NCBI RefSeq assembly: GCF_032191835.1
Contig: NC_083224.1
Coordinates: forward strand, 58,094,001 to 58,158,000
DNA from: Heteronotia binoei
Taxonomy: Eukaryota
Length of the DNA stretch: 64,000 nucleotides
Reading direction: 5' to 3'
The notes beneath the pieces are model-generated. The model ran no database searches. It was not told the origin of the DNA and was given only the letters and a program-made list of their open reading frames with translations. Below are positions 6,541-54,985 of the stretch, one piece after another. The position numbers and the translations under genes were made by a program. Positions within the stretch are counted from its first letter, which is position 1; each line of letters starts with the position of its first letter.

Positions 6541-7136
6541 ACAAAAAAAGGTATAAAAAAGCACAAATGGAGAAACAAAGTTATTATATATATTTCAGCT
6601 GCTTCCCTCTCACATGAAAGCCAGGATACACACAAATAAAAGCAAGAGGCAGAGGTACCTGAAGGAAAGCCTCTGCCAAAGCTGCTATTGGCATTTACAT
6701 GGGAAGAGAGAAAGCTGAAGAACTCTTGACCTTGGTATCAAATATCACAGGAATGAGTCAATGGTCAGAGGCAATGTTAGCCATCAACTCTTGGCCACTG
6801 TAAAAAATCAGTGACTGATCAAAGATTTAATATACAAGTTCCATGGGCCCATAATAGCTGACGTGTGTTCAGCTAGTAGTAATATGCCACAAATCATGAT
6901 GTTAACAGTTAGCATTATCTACATTGTCTTATTTGCACTCCCACAGGATTTGAATGATCTTGCATTGCATAGTAGTGTTACATTCACATTTTGAAACTTT
7001 AATTTAGCTGATTATTTGGCATCCTCTTGAGTATCAACAGTTATTTACATTTTTAACAGTGCAATCCTATGCAAGCTTAGTATTTCTTTATAGCATGTAT
7101 TAAAAACATTGTATGTGGTGTATCTTGCCTACCTAC

Positions 7137-7319
7137 CTCACTGGTGAACATTGCACAGAAGTAGTCACTGCAAGCAGCTAATACAATACGATGGGCTGGA
7201 AAGTCTTTCTGTTCCACACGCAAGGTCACATCACAAAGTGTGTTACTTTTTCGAAGTGAATTCATTGCATTAAGAATCGACTTGGCATGAGAATTAGTCA
7301 TTATATCTTTAGGAGCCAT
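7137..7319 (-). CDS. KLHL12: KLHL12 first coding segment ([61 protein letters not shown])
   Basis: Recognisable KLHL12 N-terminus; exon 7328-7137 with CTGCAG acceptor and GTAGGT donor, phase 0 into the exon at 1825. Confidence 0.97.
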
Positions 7320-9639
7320 AGTGAAGTACTGCAGCTAGCCAGGAGTGTTGAGAAGGCTGGTTCTCTATCAGTAGCCTGTTAAGAGAAAAATTTGCTTCAC
7401 TGTAGGTTTTTAAGAGTCATGAGGCAGAGACTGCCAAAGGCAAAAATGAAGAACAAGGCCACTGGTGCCTGCTGAAGTTCTCTCATCTGTTCTCCCATCT
7501 TTCCTACCAGCCAGGCTTATAAGGCTTGTTGTATTCAGTTGTATTAAAGTTCTAATAGAGTTGATTGTACAGAGGTGGTAAACAAAAAAGCTGTATATTT
7601 TTAACAGACTAAAACCCCAGAACACACAACTACATCATTAACCTACCTCCAGATGTCTGCAGTTTAGATGTAGAACATTAGACTATATAGTACAACATAC
7701 AGTTTACAACACACAGGAACAAAGAGGAAAGACAAAGGCTGATAACTGTGGAGTTTGTGTGAAAACCACCTTGGGCACACTTCTGTAGGGAAAGGTGGTA
7801 TATTAATAACATTTTAATAAAGTACACTGCAATGAACCTTCACACTCTGACAGCATGGCCAGTCGAATACACAGGCACTTTCTTACCATCATCAATTGTT
7901 TAATTTATCTAAAATGTATAATAGTGGGCTGGATTTAAAGATGCCCTATGTAAACTGAAGGTACATCCAGTGAAGCAAGGAAGGCTCTGCAATTTTTGGA
8001 CATTTTCCCATTTTAAGTTCAGGGCCCTGCACTGTAGCCTACACTGACCCTTCAGATCAACTTTTTTGGTAGCACAGAAGGCTGGAAAGGTTTTGTCAGG
8101 GAAGAGAATATAGGTTTCACTGGACGGGTTTAGATCCCATAGTTGAAGAACTATGCTATGAAATATTGTCTAACATTTTTATAATGCTTTAAAGTTTTCA
8201 ACGTGCTTTCTATATATTACCTCAATACTTGCTACAACATTTTTGTAACACAAGTCATTATTATTAGTCTGCACTGCACTGCAGATGGGGGCTGAGGCTA
8301 AAAGACAATATTTGCTACAAAACAGCTCAATGATGAGATTCAACAGATTTCAGTAGTGAAGAATGTATTTCTCCTTTCATATTTACAGCTCACTAACCTC
8401 ATCTAATATTTCACATCAAGACATCTCCTTTTTATGATGACATACACAAACCAATAAAATACATTAAAATAAGCCTGTGTGCATCTAAACAGAATTATTC
8501 ACCTTTTCCCAGGATCGGGACAATAATAGGCCCTTCTAGAAGTAAAGCCATGAACTTTTTTTTTTACCAGGCTCCATGCACACAGCCCTGGTGATCTGGA
8601 AGAAACCCCATCAGACTCATGAGGACTTACTTCTGATTAAACATCTTTAGGATCTGGCTGTTCGCAATTGTCATAATAAAGTTTTGATACATTAAAATCA
8701 CAGTTTATACTAGTCTTCACAGCATTCCCATTTTATTCCAAGTTTCAGCTTTGTGGGCAGACTCTAGGAATGGGCTAGATGCATGACTTTTGCAAAGCAA
8801 TCTAGCACAGATGTGTCTAGTGATACAATGATGGCTTTCAGATATTTCCAAGTGTGTCATGAGAATCTATGCCTTAAATCTATTATTTTGTACTACACAG
8901 GAGCCTCAAGGCAGTGGATTATGAATTCTGCATGAAATCTAGAAACAGAAACATGACTTCTGATTAGATGACAGAAACATGACTTCTGATTAGATGACAG
9001 AATTTTTGGTGTACTTGACTAAGATTGCTTCCCCCCCATCCCACTTTGCTAGGAACTGGTAGACTGGGACAGGATGAGATACAGTCTCTTGCATCACAAT
9101 TGCCCACGCCAGTGCTGTGCTGTTGTTGCTTGAGTGCAAACACATACTGCTTATGAAGCCTGTCCTAGATCCCACTGGTACACTATGGGACAAAATATGC
9201 TATACATCTGCTGCTGCCTGTGGAGCAGGAATGGCATAGGATGTCATCCCCCTAAGCCCTGGCACCCCGGATTGAAGGCATACTGTAAAAGCACTGCTAC
9301 CGGCATCTCCCAGGACAACATAATAACCTACCCTCTCTGGCCCTTCTACTGCTCACTGTGCTGGCATTTAGAGGAGGTGCTCCAAAACTGTGCCACCACA
9401 GCAGGAATGGCACAGGACAAGGCATATCCCCCCTCCTATGCCAGCCTCTGAACCCCACTGAAGCAATTTAAGGGGAATTCGTCTTACAGCTAAAATTCCT
9501 GAAGTACTCCTAATGCACACGTACATGTCAGGCAGCAAGGAATCCCACTGGCAAGTGCAAACCACCTGTGTTTGGCAGCAGAATTAACCAGTGGTCCAAG
9601 TAACTTTGCGACATAGGCCTTTGGTTTATCAAATGGGAC

Positions 9640-24830: not shown

Positions 24831-26014
24831 AATTCTGCTAGAATCTGCTAGAATTGATATTTAGAAGCACTGAAGTTCTGCCTGCAGCTGTACTGCCATT
24901 TCCCCTTTAAGTCAGAACCAAGAAGCTTTTGCTTTGTTTTGGCTTAAAATTAGAAAGCTCTGGGAGTCCCAAGAGCTGTTGTCAGAAGGATCACAGGATC
25001 ATGCAGAACTGACTACATAAAGTGGGGGCATGGTGTATGCCAGCTAAGGGGATATCCTGGTGTGGAAACAGCATCTATCGTTAGTGGTTAAAACTACTCT
25101 TTGATTCATGACACCCAGTCTCTGTATCATTCTGGATATGTACTAAATTCAGAGGGAGCTCTTCTAGTCTGTTTGTTTAAATTGTGTGCTTTGAACCTAT
25201 CAAACAGTTATTTGATAACTTGACCCTGGTTATTTTATTTGTTGACCTGACACTGAAGTGAACTTCAGTCACTTGGGAATTATTCCCATTTATATTCCTT
25301 TCTTGCAGCTCAATGTTCCTGACCAATCAAAGCCACTAAAGTTTTAATCTCAAAAGTTGTTTAGGCTCTCTTAGTTGTTACTCCAGAATCTGGATGAGCT
25401 GCCCAGGTAGGAGTGAGTTGGTAGATGTTAGAGATGTGTGTGGAAATTTTATTCAGATGTGAGTTCAGCTTGTGTTGTTTTTTTCTGTTCAGGTTCTTTA
25501 ATATGTCCCATGTTTGGGTTTATTATTGTATATGCGTGATTCCCACCTCTAAGTTCTGTCTGCACATCAAACTGAAATTAAATTTTCAGAAACTGTAGCA
25601 TCTTCCAAAGGAGTCTTTCATTCTAAAATTTTAAGAAAACTGGAAAGGAATGGAAAAGTGCAACATATTTCTGGAACCAGCTCCTTGCACCAATCCAACA
25701 GGAACAGGATTGTAGCCGTCACTTGAAGGATTATTTATTGTTATTGGCAAGTAGAAGTTTCAATCATATCACATAAAGGTGAAAAATCATTTTGTATATG
25801 TGACTGTAGCGATCTTCCTTTTGCTGAGGTCAGTTAATGTGCAGTATCAAACACCCATGGGAAAAGAATAGTGTGAATTTCCTACTGGTAGGAACGGTGC
25901 AAGCCTGATAATTTGATTAATGCTCTGCAAATCTTCAAACTTCCTCTCTCAGACTGATGAAAAAGAAGTTATTTTCTTTGCAGAATTTGTCCCTGCTTTA
26001 TGGTCTTAACAATA

Positions 26015-26087
26015 ATGGAGCCCTTGTTGAGAGGTCTCCTAGTCCTGTTGTGCTTGCTGACTGTAGAACCAACTGAGTATGTAAATG
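26015..26087 (+). CDS. Novel chitinase-like gene, coding exon 1: signal peptide MEPLLRGLLVLLCLLTVEPTEYVN
   Basis: Strong Kozak ataATGG (alternative in-frame ATG 26000), hydrophobic core, G|GTAAGT phase-1 donor; exon has an upstream acceptor (cag ends 25983). Confidence 0.8.
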
Positions 26088-31418: not shown

Positions 31419-31530
31419 GCTATTATTCTCTTGGAGATGTGGTTAAAAGAGGTCCTGGACAGCCTATGACTTGGGCTTTGATGGTAAAGGAAGAGAGTAA
31501 TGGTCTTCTGAAACATCCTCAAGGTTTCAG
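31419..31530 (+). CDS. Novel chitinase-like gene, coding exon 3 (GYYSLGDVVKRGPGQPMTWALMVKEESNGLLKHPQGFR), Vps62-like
   Basis: 112 bp, phase 1-2, ctccttccag acceptor and GTACTT donor; GYY.LGDV motif. Confidence 0.88.
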
Positions 31531-36971: not shown

Positions 36972-37109
36972 GGAACTCTGGAAAAAGAGAAACCATGGAG
37001 CAAAGACTGAAATTAAAATACTTGAAATGGAGTGTTCAAATGGATATAAAGCTCTAGGTAATGTAGTTATTAAGGGCTACAATCCGCATCCTGATTGGCA
37101 TCGTTACAG
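36972..37109 (+). CDS. Novel chitinase-like gene, coding exon 4 (ELWKKRNHGAKTEIKILEMECSNGYKALGNVVIKGYNPHPDWHRYR), Vps62-like
   Basis: 138 bp, phase 2-2, ttttttag acceptor and GTAAGT donor; GY.ALG.VV..GY.P motif. Confidence 0.88.
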
Positions 37110-38143: not shown

Positions 38144-38250
38144 GTGTGTCAATGAAAGTCTGTTAGTACACGGAAAATCTGAATTTATCTTAAGTCTGAC
38201 CGATGAGTTTGGAGCATGGGAAATTGAAGCAGATCATGCTGTATCTACAG
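38144..38250 (+). CDS. Novel chitinase-like gene, coding exon 5 (CVNESLLVHGKSEFILSLTDEFGAWEIEADHAVST), Vps62-like
   Basis: 107 bp, phase 2-1, tttctatag acceptor and GTAATC donor; completes the YRCV motif across the junction. Confidence 0.85.
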
Positions 38251-41010: not shown

Positions 41011-42983
41011 CCTGGACTAAAATGGGACTAGATAATCCATGCCCTCCAAGAGCACTTGAAGCTGCATAGCTATCACTTACTCAAGCACTTTGTCCAAGAA
41101 TGGCATGTTGGCCACTGGACTAGTTATATAGGCCATTTGGGTCCAGCGATCAGGGGCAAGTTGGGGGGCCCCACCCAGCCTACCTTGGCTCCATCTCCAA
41201 TCCTATCCTCAGCACATTACATTCTTGCAACCCAAAGGAGGGAGGGAGAGCATTCTGGCCAGCCCCAAGCAGAAGCCTGGAAGAAAGGATGGATATAATG
41301 CATCCTCTTTCTCCCTTTGCTTGGTTTTCTATTCCCCACTACCATATTTCCCATTGATACCTCTGATTAACCTTGCAGTTATAAAACAGAAATCTACAAA
41401 GTCATTTTAAATACTAATATTGAAAGAGCACAGACTTGGTAAGGGGAAAAAACCACAGAGTAAAAAATACTAGAAGTAATCAAAACATTAAATATTGATA
41501 AACCTCCAGGAAGGAAGGAATTCTCAGCAGAATTCTGTAAGCAGTCCAGCAACAAAATACTGACTTCCCCTAACTGATCTCTTTCATGCTGTCCTAAAGA
41601 AGGGCAGAATCTTCGAGATATAGTGAGAGACAAAAGTAGTATATGTATCCCATGAATTGCATCCCATGGTATCCTACTTCCTGCTGAAACAGGACAGAAA
41701 GTTATTCACATCTCTGATTGTTGGCAGAATTTTTAAATCAAGGAATACATAATAAACCATTAAATGTTATGCTATTGAACCAAATGTCAGACAACATCAG
41801 ACATCCTTAAATATTATAAACTATAGCAAAATTAAGTCCATCACATCCCTACTGACTGGCAGCATTAAGCTTTTAATCAAGGAAGGAATACATTTTGCCA
41901 AACCTTTATGTGAAAAAAGTCATACAACCTTGGTTTTCTATAGTTTATTTTTTAATGCAACAAGAAGTCCTACCAGCTAATGCTCTGTATCAATCTCTGA
42001 TTTATTTTTAGGTAATTAGTTTATCAGTAATATTTTATGTTAATTGTTTTTTAGTTTAATAGACTAATCAAATAGTTAATTGTGTCATATCTTAATAAGT
42101 ATAAGAGCTTTGTTATATCTTTAGTTGACCTATGCTTTAATGTAGCCATATTATGTATGAAACAGTATTACGTGTAAGAACTGTGGTAGTTTATTCTGTT
42201 AAAAAGTTAATAAAAATTGTAAATGGGGAAAAAATGAAGGAATACATAATAAACATTAATGTTTTATGCTATCAAACCAAATGTCAGACAACATCAGACA
42301 TGCTTTAAACATTATCCATTTTAACAAAATGAAGTCCATCCCCTTCACAAAAATTTAACTTACTGCTGAGAGAGCTTCACAGAATGATTCATACCAAAGA
42401 TAGAAACATACAAACTTTGGACTATATTCTTCCAGAAAATATTTTAGAGCAACCCAAAAGCCATATGTGGAAGTTAATGACTTCCAATTGATAGACTTCC
42501 TGGTTTGGCGAGAACTCAACAGGGATAACTGTTGTCTCCCTTCTTCCTTGTCATGTCTCTAGAGTCCCCAGCTGAAGCAATTAGATGCAACCCTAATCAC
42601 CATAAGATTAGCTTTTCCCCAATGATATAATACTTTATGCCACCTTCCCAGAAACCTCAGTTTTCTATATTCAAGAGAAATTGGACAAATATACCAGAGT
42701 GTTGGCTTTTAAAATAAGCCTCCTGACCTGCAGAGCTATTAGCTCACATGGGTCTCATCACCTTAGGAATAAACTTTCTCAGGGTTCGAAAGGGTTGCTG
42801 AGGAGAAGAATGTGAGAAAGATCCATGATCCTTGTGTCCATGATCACAGGATCTAACCTAGTGTATGAGGCCCCTTTTAAATCTATTTGGTTGAAGTATA
42901 TCGATATAGCATGCTATCAATAAGGAAAAAGTGCTGTTATGTTAACCTTTGTATCTGGATTATTTTAGATGGCTTATCTGCAG

Positions 42984-43100
42984 GAACTTTTATAATTATG
43001 ACCAATCACCCTGAACACATGGAAAGAGTCTACGTCCTCAATGAATACAAAGTTATGTTAAAACAACATGCATCTCTTCAGTCAAATGATTCTGAGGATG
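42984..43100 (+). CDS. Novel chitinase-like gene, coding exon 6 (GTFIIMTNHPEHMERVYVLNEYKVMLKQHASLQSNDSED), end of Vps62-like domain plus linker
   Basis: 117 bp, phase 1-1, GTAAGT donor; GTF motif. Alternative in-frame acceptor at 42969. Confidence 0.82.
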
Positions 43101-43476
43101 GTAAGTTTGCTAGCAAGAAGAATCAAGTTATATTATATATGAATGTTGGGATCACATATTACCATTTGTAGACTTTCTTCCAAACAGAATGTTAGAAAAA
43201 GTTATGTACATAGCAAAAGGCTTACATGCCCCAACATCTTTATTTATTTATCTGTTTATTTATTAAATTTTAATTATTTTTTACCACCCTTCACAACTTG
43301 TGTGGGGCTCAAGATGGTTAAATTTTTTTTAGTTCAATACAATGTAAAACAAGGTAAAACCACAAAGACACAATGTTTAAAACATTCAGAACATTTAAAT
43401 ATTTGAAAACATATACAGCCAATTTAGTAGTGTGATTGATAGATAAATAGATCAAGATGGGTAGTCTGTCTGTAGC

Positions 43477-43755
43477 AGAAGAAGAAGATATTGGATTTAT
43501 ATCCCGCCCTCCACTCCGAAGAGTCTCAGAGCGGCTCACAATCTCCTTTACCTTCCTCCCCCACAACAGACAACCTGTGAGGTGGGTGGGGTGGAGAGGG
43601 CTCTCACAGCAGCTGCCCTTTCAAGGACAACCTCTGCCAGAGCTATGGCTGACCCAAGGCCATTCCAGCAGGTGCAAATGGAGGAGTGGGGAATCAAACC
43701 CGGTTCTCCCAGATAAGAGTCCGCACACTTAACCACTACACCAAACTGGCTCTCC
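43477..43755 (-). mobile_element. tRNA-derived SINE with (TTC)n tail, of a type I associate with gecko genomes
   Basis: Minus strand: ggtgtagtggttaag A box, ggtttgattcc B box, body, tcttcttcttct tail. Confidence 0.85.
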
Positions 43756-44349: not shown

Positions 44350-44554
44350 GGTCTCCTTGCAAGATTGTATGTTACATCACTAAGTGGGCTCAATTCCGGC
44401 GTGATCCTACAAAGTTTTACCCAGAGGATATAGACCCAGATTTGTGCACTCATATAACATTTGCCTTTGCGATCATAAGCAAAAACCAACTCTCCCTTAA
44501 TGGATGGGATGAAGGAAGTGTCCTTTTCTCCCAGATTCAAACATTAAAGAAGAG
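44350..44554 (+). CDS. Novel chitinase-like gene, coding exon 7: first GH18 exon (SPCKIVCYITKWAQFRRDPTKFYPEDIDPDLCTHITFAFA...)
   Basis: Clear GH18 motifs VCY..WAQ.R and IDP.LCTH..AFA; 205 bp, phase 1-2. Confidence 0.95.
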
Positions 44555-46021: not shown

Positions 46022-46075
46022 AAATCCAGCATTGTTTATTTTGTTAGCTGTTGGAGGAAACAGATTTGGCACTGC
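46022..46075 (+). CDS. Novel chitinase-like gene, coding exon 8 (NPALFILLAVGGNRFGTA)
   Basis: Equivalent of the GH18 K.LLAIGGWNFGT exon; 54 bp, phase 2-2, GTGAGT donor. Confidence 0.92.
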
Positions 46076-46706: not shown

Positions 46707-48294
46707 TTTTCACTTCTTCATAGTCTCAACCTGAGAAACTATGCAAATCATTCTGAGCTCAGTCAATGTTTTAATTGTATTTAAAACCTTATGGGGGGTG
46801 TCAGATCAGTGTTATGGCACTGAGCAGGACAGGGAAAACAATGTTTTGTTTTTAGTTCAGGCCCCAATGGGGTGATCCTCACATTTAAGCATGTCTATCT
46901 GTTCATGGGTGGAATAGTTTATGGTCAGATAATTATAATGCCCATGAGGAAGGCTGTTTGAATCCTGTGCCCTCCTGTGTTGGATTCCCCTGCATGAAGC
47001 AAGATTTGCATTTGCTCCACAGAAATCCAAGGAGGGGTGTTGGAAGTCAACCTTCTGTATGTTAACTTTAGCTTAGTGTTCCATTTTCCTGTTTCTTTCC
47101 TTAGTTCTGTACAACTAGTAGGCATGATCAGGGCCAGTCCTAGATTGGGCTATCATGCCCAGTTCAGTGCCCCTGAAGGCTGGTGCCCTAGGCGATAACC
47201 TAGTTTGCCTAGTGGCAGGGCCAGCCCTGGCCATATTTATTTTTCCCGACTTGTTCTCTAGCTTAACCTGTGGACTTGTAACAAAAGGAAAAAACTGTAT
47301 AAAAGTAACAACTGTTGATACAAGTCTTGGCTTGCTACTCTATATTTTGAAACAATTTATTATCAGTATTATTGACAGAAAAACACTACCCACTAGATGC
47401 CAGATTTTAACATTGGCAAAATTACAATAGAAGGTTTATATTACAGCAGCAGCAGCAGCAATGGATTGCCTAGGTAACTATCCATTTAATTCGCCTTCTT
47501 TAGGCTGCAGTACACTAGTTAAAGCCTTGAATTCAATAATGGAATGCCCAGTATTTCCATCAAATTTATATTTAGACACTGTGCTTAGCACAGAGACATT
47601 TTGAATCTGACAAAGGGTAACCCCTAATGGAAGACTGTTGATCTTTGAGGCTCCAACTGAAACTGTCTATACAACAACTGTAAAAACTGGAGAGTGTCTA
47701 AATATAAATTTGAAGGAAGAAATGTTGGTTGTCTTGAGCTGCTCTTACATCTTTTATTTCCTAAGAAATGTAAAAATACCTACTTCTTCTGTTTATAGAT
47801 TCAGGTGGGTAGCCGGGTTGGTTTGAAGCAGCAGAACAAAGATCTGAAGAAGGTTGCATGCATGCACATAAAAGCTTCTATCTTGGATAAAACTTTATTG
47901 GTCTTAAAGGTGTCACTGGACTCCAAGTTTTTCTTCTATTGAGTTTGTCTAAGACTCTACCTCCTTGAAATCTGAAACCCATGTTCTTTACCTGTTCAGA
48001 CAAAGTTTGTTCTCTACTTTTATTGACTGAATTCATGGTTTCTTTACTACCACCTTGAAGAATAAAGTCATGAGCCGACAAGCTATTTTATCAGATTGGG
48101 AGCAGCAGTTTTTTGTTTTTGTTACCAGTAAGAGGGAACAATCCTTTGTCCTGAATCTATAATACTTTGATACATTTTATAGCGTTGATGAACTAGATCT
48201 CAACCATTCCTTTACCAACTCATTCAGAAAGACTGATAAACTTTCAAGCTCTCTATAGAACTGTTGTTTAATGAAGCACTTTCCCCACCCCCAG

Positions 48295-48460
48295 TTTCAG
48301 CCCCATGCTTTCCACAACAGCCACCCGCAAGAGCTTCATTGACTCAGCTGTATCCATGCTACGGAGTTATGGCTTTGATGGAATCGAACTGCACTTTAAA
48401 TATCCTGGGAGTGGGAGAAGTCCCGCTAAGGACAAGCATCGCTTTGCTTCACTGACTGAG
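48295..48460 (+). CDS. Novel chitinase-like gene, coding exon 9, carrying the degenerate catalytic motif FDGIELHFKYPG
   Basis: 166 bp, phase 2-0; LRSYGFDGIELHFKYPGSGRSPAKDKHRF aligns to [29 protein letters not shown] of AMCase. Confidence 0.95.
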
Positions 48461-48538: not shown

Positions 48539-48663
48539 GAAATGACAGCAGCTTTTGAAAAAGAGGCCAGAGAGACTGGAAATAAGAAGCTGTTACTTGC
48601 TGCAGCAGTTGCTGCTCGGAAAGAAACAATTGATGCTGCATATGAAGTTGGCAAACTGTCAAA
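48539..48663 (+). CDS. Novel chitinase-like gene, coding exon 10 (EMTAAFEKEARETGNKKLLLAAAVAARKETIDAAYEVGKLSK)
   Basis: 125 bp, phase 0-2, canonical splice sites, GH18 similarity. Confidence 0.95.
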
Positions 48664-48783: not shown

Positions 48784-48907
48784 ACATCTTGATTACATTA
48801 ATGTAATGGCCTACAATTTCCATGATGGTTTTTCTGACACAGTGACAGGGCACAACAGTCCCTTGTTTGCAGGTGATCACTCTGAGGAAAGCCTGCATTC
48901 CAGCTGT
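48784..48907 (+). CDS. Novel chitinase-like gene, coding exon 11 (HLDYINVMAYNFHDGFSDTVTGHNSPLF...)
   Basis: 124 bp, phase 2-0; LDY..VM.Y and TGHNSPL GH18 motifs. Confidence 0.95.
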
Positions 48908-49002: not shown

Positions 49003-49185
49003 AAGTTTGCCATGCTGTACTGGATCCAAAAAGGTGCTCCTGCTTACAAACTCATTATGGGATTTGCCAACTATGGACATACCTTCAAGCTTAGCACCAG
49101 GAACACATCAGTGGGTGCCCCTGTCTCTGGACCTGCCCATCCAGGACGTTATACTTTTGAGGCTGGATTCCTGTCATACTATGAG
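49003..49185 (+). CDS. Novel chitinase-like gene, coding exon 12 (KFAMLYWIQKGAPAYKLIMGFANYGHTFKL...GFLSYYE)
   Basis: 183 bp, phase 0-0; YW...GAP..KL.MGF..YG motif. Confidence 0.95.
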
Positions 49186-50449: not shown

Positions 50450-50569
50450 ATCTGCAACTTTATAAAGGATGGTGCTACTGTTAAGTGGCTTGATGACCAG
50501 AAGGTTCCATATGCCTACAAAGGTTTTACCTGGGTTGGATATGACAACAAAAAGAGTTTTAGTTTCAAA
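50450..50569 (+). CDS. Novel chitinase-like gene, coding exon 13 (ICNFIKDGATVKWLDDQKVPYAYKGFTWVGYDNKKSFSFK)
   Basis: 120 bp, phase 0-0; Q.VPYAY...WVGYDN motif. Confidence 0.96.
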
Positions 50570-52646: not shown

Positions 52647-52782
52647 GCCCGGTTTGTGAAGAAGCGCAAATTTGGTGGAGTCTCAATATGGGCCATGGAC
52701 CTGGATGACTTCAGAGGCACCTTCTGCAATGAAGGACCTTACCCTCTGACAAGGGAGCTGAAAAGACTGCTTGAGGGCAATG
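52647..52782 (+). CDS. Novel chitinase-like gene, coding exon 14 (ARFVKKRKFGGVSIWAMDLDDFRGTFCNEGPYPLTRELKRLLEGN)
   Basis: 136 bp, phase 0-1; FGG..IWA.DLDDF.G.FC..G.YPL motif. Confidence 0.96.
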
Positions 52783-54056
52783 GTGAGAGGATGCCTGGGA
52801 GACTTTTAAGGGAGTCAGAAAGAATGTCAAAGCAGTTGTTCCCATCCAGCATTTATGATGTTGTTAATTATTTAATATTGATAATCTGTCCAGCAAAAAA
52901 ACTCCACTTGAGCTGGCTCACAATCACAATCAAATCACATTTAGCCCTGCCCTTGCTTTGCTGCTGTGTTCTAATGAGGAAGATGTTTTGTATTATCATT
53001 AATCATTGCCTGATTTGTTTCACATCTGCTTACTGGCACATGCACCATGAACTTGGGCCAAATTATACAGCTATCAAACTGTCCGGTTATTTCACAGTGC
53101 ATGATCAGTCCCTTTGTATGCCTTATTCCATAAGTACTTACTATTAATCTTTACAATCTCATTTAGTACCAAATGATGCACCCAACCCTTTGCAACTGGG
53201 TACTTTCCTATTACAGATTGGATGCAGGTGAAAAAGAGTGCTTCTGGCAGGTTGCGTGATAGTGGCTCGAAGTCTTGAGGGGTCTCTGGCAGTCAGCCAG
53301 GCAGCAGCTATGGCTGGGCCAGTCAAAGAGTCATCAGGGGTACAGCACCCCAGGGACTAACATGTTACAATTATACTTCTTCATGCCCTTCTGATAAAGT
53401 ACCAGATCAGCACAGTAGGAAACAAGCTTCTGTATTTAGATGAATTAATTCTGTTCTTTTTTTGTAAAGGCTTAAAAGGAGCCCATAGGAAAGGAACTAC
53501 TGCTATGGATTTCATCTTAATTGCATTTTCTGCCAGCAGAAGGTGTTTTGCTGATCTCCCCCACTCCCACTTTGTTCCTCATGTTGTTGCAGAGGATTTC
53601 AGGAGGCATGGAAGGCTGCAATAGAAGGAGGGTCATCATAAAGTTCTCATCTTCGAATGCTGTTGCATAGGAGTCAAATTGCATAGGAGCCAAGCCTATA
53701 TATTTTACTAGAAACTCATTTCTATTCAATAATTAACTTCCAGCTCATGCAACAATTAACTTCCAGCCCAATTCTGAATATGTTTAGTGGGAAGTAAATG
53801 TCAATACATTCAGTTGGATTTACTTCCTGACAAAACTCACTTAGAATGGTTGCCTTTCTATCAGTTGCATATTATTCACAATATATCTGTATTGTTTTAC
53901 AACTGGATCATAATTGCTATAGCTTATGATACAGCTTATCACCCTTCCTGTGGCCACTGTTTTTTTTTATAACTGTAGTGGCCAACAGAAAGAGGTTAAG
54001 ATATTCTATTACTGTTATACAAGAAGTCAGTGATTGATCCTATACATATCTTTCAG

Positions 54057-54787
54057 TGTGCAGCGATGCTGGACATATCACGGTACAAGCAAAAACCCTT
54101 CGACCACCCACCACTCTTCAGACTTCTACCACCCTTCGACCATCTGCTCCTTTTCAAACTTATGCCACCCTTCAAACATCTGCTGTCCTTCGAACTTCTA
54201 CCACCCTTCGACCTTCTACCACCATGCGACCATCTACCACTCTTCAAGCTTCTACCACCACCCAACCGTTCACCACCATTCATACTTCTACCAGGCTTCA
54301 ACCGTTCACTGCCCTTCAAAATTCTACCACCCTTCAACTGTTTACCACCCTTCGACCACCCACCACCCTTCAAACTTCTACTGCCCTTCAACCACCCACC
54401 ACTTTTCAACCTTCTGCCACCCTTCAACCTTCAATAAGTTTTGGTAGAGGATTTTGCAGGGAAAAACCTGATGGCAATTACTCTTACCCATCTGACCCAC
54501 GTAAATACTTTATTTGTGCAAGCAAGACAGTATATATCAAGCTTTGTTCTCAGAACATGGTCTATGATGAATACCAAAAGGAATGTATGCGGTCTGTTTT
54601 GCCACCTGGTAATTTTTGTACACTTAAATATGATGGCTACTACCCTTACCCTGAGGATCAACAAAAATATTTTGTATGTGCTGAAGGGCAAACATGGATT
54701 CTGAATTGTCCAAAAGGTGAAGTATTCAGTAAAATCATCAGATGGTGCATAGTGTCACCAGATATTCTCACTGGGGATGGACTGTGA
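54057..54787 (+). CDS. Novel chitinase-like gene, last coding exon: Thr/Ser/Pro-rich hexapeptide repeats plus two CBM14 (peritrophin-A) domains
   Basis: tttcag acceptor gives phase-1 continuation GN|VCSD; FC...DG.Y.YP.D..KYF.C....C....F....C pattern twice; TGA at 54785-54787. Confidence 0.92.
54095..54436 (+). repeat. Coding minisatellite, 19 x 18-bp units (TL[RQ][PT][SP]T)
   Basis: Direct reading: acccttcgaccacccacc-like units in register. Confidence 0.92.
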
Positions 54788-54985
54788 ACTAGCGAGGATG
54801 ATAGCACTTACCCTTATCCTGGAGATCCAACTAAATATTAAATATGTTCTGGAGGGCAAATTCACCTCCATTAATTGTTTGGAACCAGTCACCTGCAAGT
54901 GCTTCATATTTGTGAGTAAAACAAATATTAACAGCCACTTCTTCTAATAGTAATTGTAGTTCCTCCCCTTCCCTTCAAATACAGC

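Follow-up and report, generated by a model that had tools for sequence, protein, structure and literature searches.

Gene structure at the locus

The window analysed here is a 64,000-nucleotide stretch of the Heteronotia binoei genome (NC_083224.1, positions 58,094,001 to 58,158,000), and all coordinates below are counted from its first letter. An earlier note on this DNA had pointed to positions 48295–48460, where the catalytic motif of a glycoside hydrolase family 18 (GH18) chitinase is replaced by DGIELHFK, and had proposed an independently evolved chitinase-like lectin. This segment is exon 9 of a 15-exon gene on the forward strand (26015–54787), which is read in one intact open frame of 842 codons and has a coding sequence of 2,529 nt. 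To place the exons, P0152 of Paroedura picta (850 aa), the nearest orthologue, was aligned to the window by tblastn; the exons were then joined at canonical AG/GT borders in consistent phases. P0152 is collinear with the gene model over the full length, and the 28 canonical splice signals are intact, so that the intact frame claimed by the note is borne out.

The encoded protein consists of a signal peptide, a Vps62/DUF946-like beta domain (hereafter the N-domain), a GH18 domain, a stalk of Thr-rich six-residue repeats and two CBM14 domains, in this order. The protein is accordingly no stand-alone chi-lectin; its GH18 domain is embedded in a multi-domain, mucin-stalked protein. Domain and fold searches used stand-ins for the spliced protein, namely individual exons, the Paroedura orthologue, and P0274 and P0276, two RefSeq fragments with exact matches. 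The features of the gene are as follows.

26015–26087 (+): exon 1, start codon and signal peptide (MEPLLRGLLVLLCLLTVEP...); identical to RefSeq P0274
27984–28106 (+): exon 2, start of the N-domain; tblastn with gecko orthologues, AG/GT borders
31419–31530 (+): exon 3, N-domain (GYYSLGDVV...); tblastn, AG/GT borders
36972–37109 (+): exon 4, N-domain, symmetric (phase 2-2); tblastn, AG/GT borders
38144–38250 (+): exon 5, N-domain; tblastn, AG/GT borders
42969–43100 (+): exon 6, last of the N-domain; RNA contig joint 43099>44349, GT..AG
44350–44554 (+): exon 7, start of GH18, PF00704 E 5.8e-07; Pfam, RNA joints
46022–46075 (+): exon 8, GH18, with GGNRFG at 46053–46070; RNA joints
47105–47119 (+): alternative terminal mini-exon (..VLYN*) in intron 8, used by the RefSeq model P0274
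48295–48460 (+): exon 9, GH18 active-site strand; Pfam, phmmer, RNA joints
48377–48409 (+): motif codons for DGIELHFKYPG (GAT GGA ATC GAA CTG CAC TTT AAA TAT CCT GGG), within exon 9
48539–48663 (+): exon 10, GH18; AG/GT borders, RNA joints
48784–48907 (+): exon 11, GH18, PF00704 E 1.3e-07; Pfam, RNA joints
49003–49185 (+): exon 12, GH18, PF00704 E 4.9e-08; Pfam, AG/GT borders
50450–50569 (+): exon 13, GH18; Pfam, tblastn, AG/GT borders
52647–52782 (+): exon 14, GH18, with IWAMDLDD at 52686–52709; tblastn, AG/GT borders
54057–54787 (+): exon 15, repeat stalk, two CBM14 domains and stop codon (54785–54787); Pfam PF01607, Tandem Repeats Finder

An in-frame ATG upstream of the exon 1 start, at 26000, is the start chosen by the RefSeq model. 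PF00704 (Glyco_hydro_18) matched five of the eight GH18 exons with E values of 7.5e-13 to 6.4e-06 at collinear profile positions 1–298, and the Paroedura GH18 domain (82% identical to that of the window) matched it over 1–317 of 317 positions with E 4e-85; these matches along the barrel establish membership of the GH18 family. When exon 9 was searched against 1.8 billion representative proteins, the only single-stretch matches above 70% identity were two gecko proteins, P0010 and P0011 (73–74%), in which the equivalent of exon 9 lies approximately 165 residues farther from the N-terminus than in a normal chitinase.

Replacement of the catalytic motif and active site cleft

AG precedes exon 9, which begins at 48295, and GT follows its end at 48460; its in-frame translation is FSPMLSTTATRKSFIDSAVSMLRSYGFDGIELHFKYPGSGRSPAKDKHRFASLTE. 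It contains FDGIELHFKYPG at the place where active GH18 enzymes have FDG[LI]D[LF]D[WF]EYPG. PF00704 matched exon 9 alone with E 7.5e-13 over profile positions 80–130, and a gap-free phmmer alignment to mouse and human AMCase, CHIT1 and Ym1 sets D-G-I-E-L-H-F-K over D-G-L-D-L/F-D-W-E. Compared with the DxxDxDxE motif of active GH18 enzymes, Glu stands for the second Asp, His for the third and Lys for the catalytic Glu. In CHIT1/AMCase numbering, which was checked against the chain offsets of the phmmer alignment, the changes are D136E, D138H, W139F and E140K; the Lys codon in place of that for the catalytic Glu is AAA at 48398–48400. The reading of the motif in the earlier note is therefore upheld by translation, Pfam, phmmer alignment and an RNA contig with no differences in the motif (see below). 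The motifs that it had cited for comparison are also correct (DGLDLAWLYP in a CHI3L1 domain and DGLDLFFLYP in an OVGP1, both in our compared set), and the substitution set is distinct as it had stated: E-x-H-x-K here versus D-x-A/S/F-x-L/I in mammalian chitinase-like proteins (Q in Ym1).

The cleft also departs from active GH18 enzymes at several of the positions W99/N100, Y212/D213 and W218 (CHIT1 numbering). GGNRFG in exon 8 stands in place of GGWNFG (loss of W99 and N100), and AYNFHDGF at 48809–48832 in exon 11 in place of (A/T)YDFHGSW (D213 to Asn, W218 to Phe). CYITKW at 44370–44387 in exon 7 retains W31 and has Lys for N30. Y27, Y212, Y267, E297 and the equivalent of W358 (in IWAMDLDD of exon 14) are retained as well.

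Retaining hydrolysis by GH18 enzymes requires the Glu of DxE as acid/base and the preceding Asp, and mutation of either abolishes or nearly abolishes activity; every GH18 protein known to us without the Glu is inactive. The window GH18 domain lacks both the catalytic acid E140 and D138, which positions the N-acetyl group of the substrate, besides W99, N100, D213 and W218. Because the catalytic residues of the substrate-assisted mechanism are replaced, chitin hydrolysis by this domain is not expected. We regard it as very improbable that the domain is still a glycosidase or transglycosylase acting through other residues: the barrel, the acidic side chain at 136, Y212 and the Trp at the bottom of the cleft are retained and purifying selection persists (see below), but basic residues stand in place of both the Glu of DxE and the preceding Asp, and D213 is missing as well. 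Canonical binding of chito-oligosaccharides in the cleft is also doubtful, since W99 and W218 are two of the main sugar-stacking tryptophans.

Transcript evidence and public annotation

RNA run X1, from a metatranscriptomic library of 2024, bears the same species label as a DNA run containing the locus. One X1 contig of 2,836 nt, a length compatible with the coding sequence plus untranslated regions, aligns to exons 6, 7, 8, 9, 10 and 11, and its depth at the gene is approximately 40. The joints (43099>44349, 44552>46020, 46075>48295, 48458/60>48537/39 and 48664>48785) agree with the predicted splice sites within the stated ambiguity. Both joints flanking exon 9 are GT..AG, and the acceptor used is 48295, not the in-frame alternative at 48301. 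The junction between the Vps62-like and GH18 parts is thus real in RNA. Of the words sampled from exon 15, 72% also occur in X1. Five differences separate the contig from the window: three are synonymous, two are nonsynonymous (P199H and A359P), and none falls in the motif. The Lys codon is retained, which indicates that a second individual also encodes DGIELHFK.

RefSeq represents the locus differently. P0274 (“uncharacterized protein LOC132567301”, 237 aa) is identical to residues 1–228 and then runs into the mini-exon at 47105, while P0276 (“acidic mammalian chitinase-like”, 301 aa) is identical to residues 319–599 followed by a different tail. The two models end in alternative terminal exons in intron 8 (47105–47119) and intron 14 (approximately 53177–53275, +), respectively, and fragments of the gene bear the database labels “acidic mammalian chitinase-like”, “chitotriosidase-1-like” and “uncharacterized”. 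The present gene model corrects this annotation, in which one gene is divided in two and one piece is named as an acidic mammalian chitinase.

A tRNA-derived short interspersed nuclear element (SINE) in intron 6 (43480–43755) draws RNA contig depths of up to 650,000 in each of three runs, and the very high depth at 43350–43750 is due to it; the many genomic copies of the SINE account for this, and it is not part of the gene. The sole Rfam match at the gathering threshold is tRNA-like (1085–1156, +, 58.7 bits) and lies within an apparent further SINE.

N-domain, repeat stalk and CBM14 domains

The N-domain, encoded by exons 2–6, is all-beta and comprises approximately 200 residues. The N-domains of orthologues matched Pfam Vps62 (PF06101), with E values of 1.2e-09 for Paroedura, 5e-07 for Pogona and 2.4e-06 for Hemicordylus. 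For the window itself, Pfam found nothing in the N-domain (P0274) at a threshold as loose as E 10, nor in the upstream exons taken singly. An AlphaFold model of the window N-domain had a mean predicted local distance difference test score (pLDDT) of 59, with 70–87 in the core. In a fold search, this model (pLDDT 59) matched DUF946/Vps62 AlphaFold clusters with E 1e-10 to 1e-8, as well as a domain of the insecticidal MACPF protein GNIP1Aa (6fbm, E 2e-07) and a domain of pleurotolysin B. A genome search for a Vps62-like donor of these exons returned only the five exons of the gene itself. Exon 4 is found in the Paroedura, Pogona and Anolis models and is missing from those of Euleptes and Eublepharis; it encodes the second “GYKALG” half of the N-domain and is probably used as a cassette.

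The stalk is made of approximately 18 copies of an 18-nt Thr-rich repeat encoding TTLQTS-like units (54110–54432; Tandem Repeats Finder). It is followed by the first (54452–54586) and second (54614–54748) CBM14 domains, which PF01607 matched in two stretches of exon 15 with E 6.8e-19 and 68 bits (cut-off 22.1), so that both belong to this family. Each copy has four Cys; the CBM14 of CHIT1 has six. A putative fossil third CBM14 past the stop codon (54753–54944, +) was discarded, as it had no Pfam match at E 10; a faint likeness to KY..C..G....NC is visible by eye.

Orthologues and the order of residue changes

Proteins with the same N-domain were found in geckos, one cordylid and iguanians. Their motifs are listed below.

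Iguanian, Anolis (two species; P0174, P0186) and Phrynosoma (P0183): DGLDLDFEYPG
Iguanian, Pogona (P0169): DGADLDFEYPG
Iguanian, Phrynocephalus forsythii (P0182): DGIDLVFEYPG
Cordylid, Hemicordylus capensis (P0118): DGLDLHFEYPG
Gecko, Eublepharis and Sphaerodactylus: DGIDLHFEHPG
Gecko, Euleptes: DGIELHFEHPG
Gecko, Paroedura: DGTELHFEHPG
Gecko, Gekko kuhli: DGIELHFEYPG
Gecko, Heteronotia (window): DGIELHFKYPG

The iguanian orthologues retain active-type cleft residues (GGWNFG and YDFHG). D138H (GAC>CAC), the loss of W99, N100R and D213N are common to all six geckos sampled, in which GG(N/S/R)RFG stands for GGWNFG, YN for YD, Phe or Leu for W218 and, in most, Lys or Gln for N30. E140K is seen in Heteronotia only, whereas Tyr141 is common to Heteronotia and Gekko. 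Codon 140 is GAA in Paroedura, Eublepharis and Anolis and AAA in Heteronotia, a single GAA>AAA change. D138 is also altered with E140 retained in Phrynocephalus (Val) and Hemicordylus (His). The third Asp seems to have been the first residue to go, repeatedly, within the clade.

Phylogeny and genomic neighbourhood

A tree of 58 GH18 domains was built with IQ-TREE under LG+C20+F+G4 (the salamander proteins P0027 and P0030, discussed below, stand outside it). The ten Vps62–GH18 proteins form one clade with 100/100 support and a stem of 0.34, inside a tetrapod group with DGIDLDFEYPG-type motifs, and their neighbours are lepidosaur paralogues (the second domains of Lacerta and Salvator proteins and a tuatara protein). 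CHIT1, CHI3L1 and CHI3L2 form a separate clade (97/98), and OVGP1 and CHIA also fall outside the DGIDLDFE-type group. Forcing the Vps62–GH18 clade together with CHI3L1, CHI3L2 and OVGP1 was worse by 46 log-likelihood units, with p 0.023 in the approximately unbiased test for a group chosen after the tree had been viewed. The window gene is thus not nested as an orthologue of any of these three chi-lectins, from which it also differs in its substitutions. The different paralogue group, the retention of DxxDxDxE in iguanian orthologues and the worse fit of the forced union together argue that the Glu was lost independently of the mammalian chi-lectins.

The gecko stem is 0.31, and Hemicordylus groups with the geckos at 90/69. 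Whether D138H was shared between them or convergent, two steps are required. The separate origin put forward in the earlier note therefore holds with respect to mammals, while its placing “in squamates” is narrowed to an origin in Gekkota, where four of the changes are clade-wide, completed in Heteronotia by E140K.

The locus lies between a KLHL12-like gene and a Shisa gene, on the chromosome that also carries the main chitinase cluster, 22 Mb away. We take the BTB/BACK exons at 1616–1855 and 7080–7334 (−) to be KLHL12-like. In both Paroedura and Anolis sagrei, the gene is followed downstream by a Shisa gene, and the sequences flanking it in Paroedura run collinear with the window; this shared neighbour and the collinear flanks support orthology. 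A CpG-rich region at 57.4–58.1 kb precedes the position of the Shisa gene known from Paroedura and Anolis. The seven other GH18 active-site exons in the genome form one cluster (C2:80.20–80.55 Mb), and all seven retain DG[LI]D[LIF]D[WF]E. The two DGIDLDFEYPG-type exons among them are the closest to the window gene, with exon identities of 60% and 55%.

Selection on the GH18 domain

Codons were read from the genomic sequence of the orthologous loci in Paroedura, Eublepharis, Anolis sagrei and Gekko kuhli. The ratio of nonsynonymous to synonymous substitution rates (dN/dS, omega) was computed from Nei-Gojobori distances by way of three-point branch lengths, and codons were bootstrapped 1,000 times. 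Among geckos, the pairwise omega of GH18 was 0.26–0.39. The values for the window branch, with 95% confidence intervals in brackets, were as follows.

Triple with Paroedura and Eublepharis (368 codons): omega 0.45 (0.25–0.89), 1.2% of bootstraps at or above 1
Triple with Gekko and Paroedura (313 codons): omega 0.42 (0.25–0.73), 0.3% of bootstraps at or above 1
Triple with Gekko and Eublepharis (313 codons): omega 0.37 (0.22–0.64), 0.1% of bootstraps at or above 1

Omega on the other branches was 0.24–0.42 (0.34–0.42 for Gekko and 0.24–0.28 for Paroedura). Purifying selection of moderate strength has thus continued to act on the GH18 domain since E140K, about as strongly as in geckos with E140 retained. 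This similarity suggests that inactivation predates E140K; on the simplest reading, the gecko ancestor could already do without the Glu. In its structural part, the protein belongs to the chitinase-like class: it combines a GH18 fold that lacks the catalytic acid with a gene that is intact, expressed and under constraint.

These data also bear on whether the GH18 domain is a decaying relic, with the gene or the domain drifting towards a pseudogene in Heteronotia and E140K neutral. At a branch dS of approximately 0.11–0.14, about ten stop codons would be expected by our estimate if the sequence were neutral, and the frame and splice signals are intact. RefSeq has no full-length product, but spliced full-length RNA is present at the depth given above. 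Among the geckos, the terminal branch of the window is the longest (0.17 versus 0.08–0.10), its GH18 domain carries 33 unique amino-acid changes versus 19 in Paroedura (chi2 3.8), and several invariant residues are replaced; against this, omega stays below 1 in nearly all bootstraps and is no different from that of Gekko, which retains E140. We therefore consider decay improbable.

Several observations weigh against a maintained, non-catalytic gecko module. The inactivity and any ligand are predicted from residues, and the assignment of substitutions to the cleft depends on the alignment to AMCase and CHIT1 and on the structures of these enzymes. The window lineage has lost otherwise invariant residues (Y244F, N282D, D283E, T303I, R355G, G356R and Y440F). 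The full-length transcript was seen in one RNA run of one study. RefSeq splits the locus into two partial models without exons 7–8 and exon 15, which implies either that other transcript forms exist or that expression was low in the annotators' samples. An omega of approximately 0.4 denotes moderate constraint only, and in the first triple the window omega was about twice that of the Paroedura branch (bootstrap support 0.92 for GH18 alone and 0.994 with the N-domain). Relaxed constraint on the window branch, as this triple suggested, was rejected because the signal was gone once Gekko kuhli was added (support 0.35–0.67).

Charge inversion of the GH18 domain

The isoelectric point (pI) and net charge at pH 7 calculated for the GH18 domains separate the geckos from their iguanian orthologues.

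Window and three geckos with a complete GH18 domain: pI 8.85–9.18 (window 9.2), net charge +7.6 to +11.9
Hemicordylus: pI 8.1, net charge +2.3
Iguanian orthologues: pI 5.1–5.8, net charge −4.7 to −13.5
Nearly all active-type chitinases in the set: pI below 6.1, net charge negative
Mammalian domains without catalytic Glu: pI 8.6 (CHI3L1), 9.1 (CHI3L2) and 9.4 (OVGP1), net charge positive

Summed over aligned columns, the mean shift between the geckos and the iguanians plus outgroups is +20 charges. The fixed gecko changes include N100R, D138H, D213N and an E>K change in the loop directly after the motif, and most of the shift lies outside the motif, where 15 sites were listed. The effect is spread over the domain and is gecko-wide, whereas K140 is not. 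The calculated charge inversion parallels that of the mammalian chi-lectins by convergence, and simple decay would hardly explain it.

The earlier note had suggested that the Lys/His pair could favour an acidic glycan. The idea of an anionic ligand gains indirect support from the predicted inversion across the whole domain, beyond that pair. In the form given in the note, with the cleft still a lectin site and the pair retargeting it to an acidic glycan, it appears rather unlikely. The cleft gains K30 (YFTNW to YITKW) and R100 besides H138 and K140, loses D213 and keeps W31, Y27, Y212, Y267, E297 and the W358 equivalent, within a domain that is basic as a whole, as in YKL-40, which binds heparin. 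However, W99 and W218, the +1 and +2 stacking platforms that YKL-40 and Ym1 retain, are gone, most of the charge change is outside the motif, and K140, being absent from the other geckos, provides no basis for a function of the clade.

Discussion

We consider it likely, taking all of the evidence together, that the locus holds an intact, expressed, secreted multi-domain gene whose GH18 domain descends from an active squamate chitinase, was remodelled in geckos and then lost its catalytic acid by E140K, while constraint was kept, and now constitutes a basic, non-catalytic module. The squamate-specific clade derives from an active chitinase of the DGIDLDFEYPG type, with the active motif kept in iguanian members. 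In geckos, the cleft was remodelled and the GH18 net charge moved from about −10 to about +10. The single GAA>AAA change in the Heteronotia lineage came last, with purifying selection continuing, and the domain would now act as a strongly basic binding or scaffold module. Given that the +1/+2 sugar platforms are gone, chitin anchoring probably rests with the CBM14 pair at the end of the presumably O-glycosylated stalk, and the basic barrel and the toxin-targeting-like N-domain would give other binding surfaces.

Because the basic shift matches the basic pI of CHI3L1, CHI3L2 and OVGP1, a polyanionic partner would be the most likely new ligand class, and candidates would be sulfated or sialylated glycans, heparan sulfate and acidic components of cuticle or mucus. 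As a tentative proposal, which we hold to be possible but not probable, the CBM14 pair of the gecko protein may tether it to chitin while the charge-inverted, inactive barrel binds a polyanion, be it on the cuticle of prey, on parasites or fungi, or on the gecko's own mucus. The protein would then be a novel type of vertebrate chitinase-like protein, a counterpart of YKL-40 and OVGP1 that is convergent with them yet distinct in mechanism, and E140K the final loss of an unneeded residue.

Chitinase-like proteins, a textbook example of enzymes that became binding proteins, have repeatedly been born from chitinases in mammals and insects, and the well-studied vertebrate ones are nearly all mammalian. 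CHI3L1/YKL-40, CHI3L2/YKL-39, OVGP1 and Ym1/Chil3 are likewise secreted GH18 barrels without the catalytic Glu that arose from duplicated active chitinases. The GH18 pI of the mammalian chitinase-like proteins (8.6–9.4) encompasses that of the window, and OVGP1 also has a mucin-like tail. The gecko protein belongs to a separate clade and is not orthologous to them; it lacks W99 and W218, which YKL-40 retains, and has two CBM14 domains and a Vps62-like N-domain, whereas the mammalian proteins are without CBM14. The closest solved structures to the GH18 domain of the gecko orthologue are those of AMCase (2ybt/3fxy, E 1e-118) and CHIT1 (E 1e-117). These enzymes share with the gecko gene the order GH18–linker–CBM14 and the exon structure. 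They differ in their complete DxxDxDxE motif, in the presence of W99, D213 and W218, in an acidic pI and in a single CBM14, and they lack an extra N-domain.

The iguanian orthologues have the same architecture as the gecko gene (Vps62-like domain, GH18, linker and CBM14), a Shisa gene downstream and a place in the same fully supported clade. Unlike the gecko protein, they have DG[LA]DLDFEYPG (Pogona, Anolis and Phrynosoma) and an acidic pI, and from their residues those of Pogona, Anolis and Phrynosoma look like active chitinases. Two salamander proteins of the same DGIDLxF-type group, from Lissotriton helveticus (P0027) and Pleurodeles waltl (P0030), have DGIDLHFQYPG and thus share D138H and the loss of the Glu with the window, but they have Gln instead of Lys, an ordinary length of 482–489 aa and no Vps62 domain; they may represent a further chitinase-like lineage that arose independently in vertebrates. 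Lys at the acid position, as in the window, also occurs in the inactive “chitinase 10”-type domains (DGMDLIWKYPD and DGIDIVWKN) of P0005 from the fly Condylostylus, an uncharacterised arthropod protein with several GH18 domains and an unrelated origin.

A literature search, which did not extend to the principal survey of GH18 paralogues in vertebrates (Hussain & Wilson 2013, J Mol Evol 76:240), returned no description of a Vps62–GH18 protein or of a gecko or squamate chitinase-like protein. What is new here is an independent squamate case with a graded series in one orthologue, the combination of Vps62-like and CBM14 domains, and the charge inversion; the kind of protein itself is known. The gene would replay the passage from enzyme to binding protein, stepwise and independently, with orthologues that are active-looking in iguanians, remodelled in geckos and without the Glu in Heteronotia, and with no detectable change in constraint. 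This series allows a direct test of which changes abolish activity, which create a new binding property, and whether a basic surface is a hallmark of GH18 pseudoenzymes. The case is a good natural experiment on the evolution of pseudoenzymes rather than a new principle.

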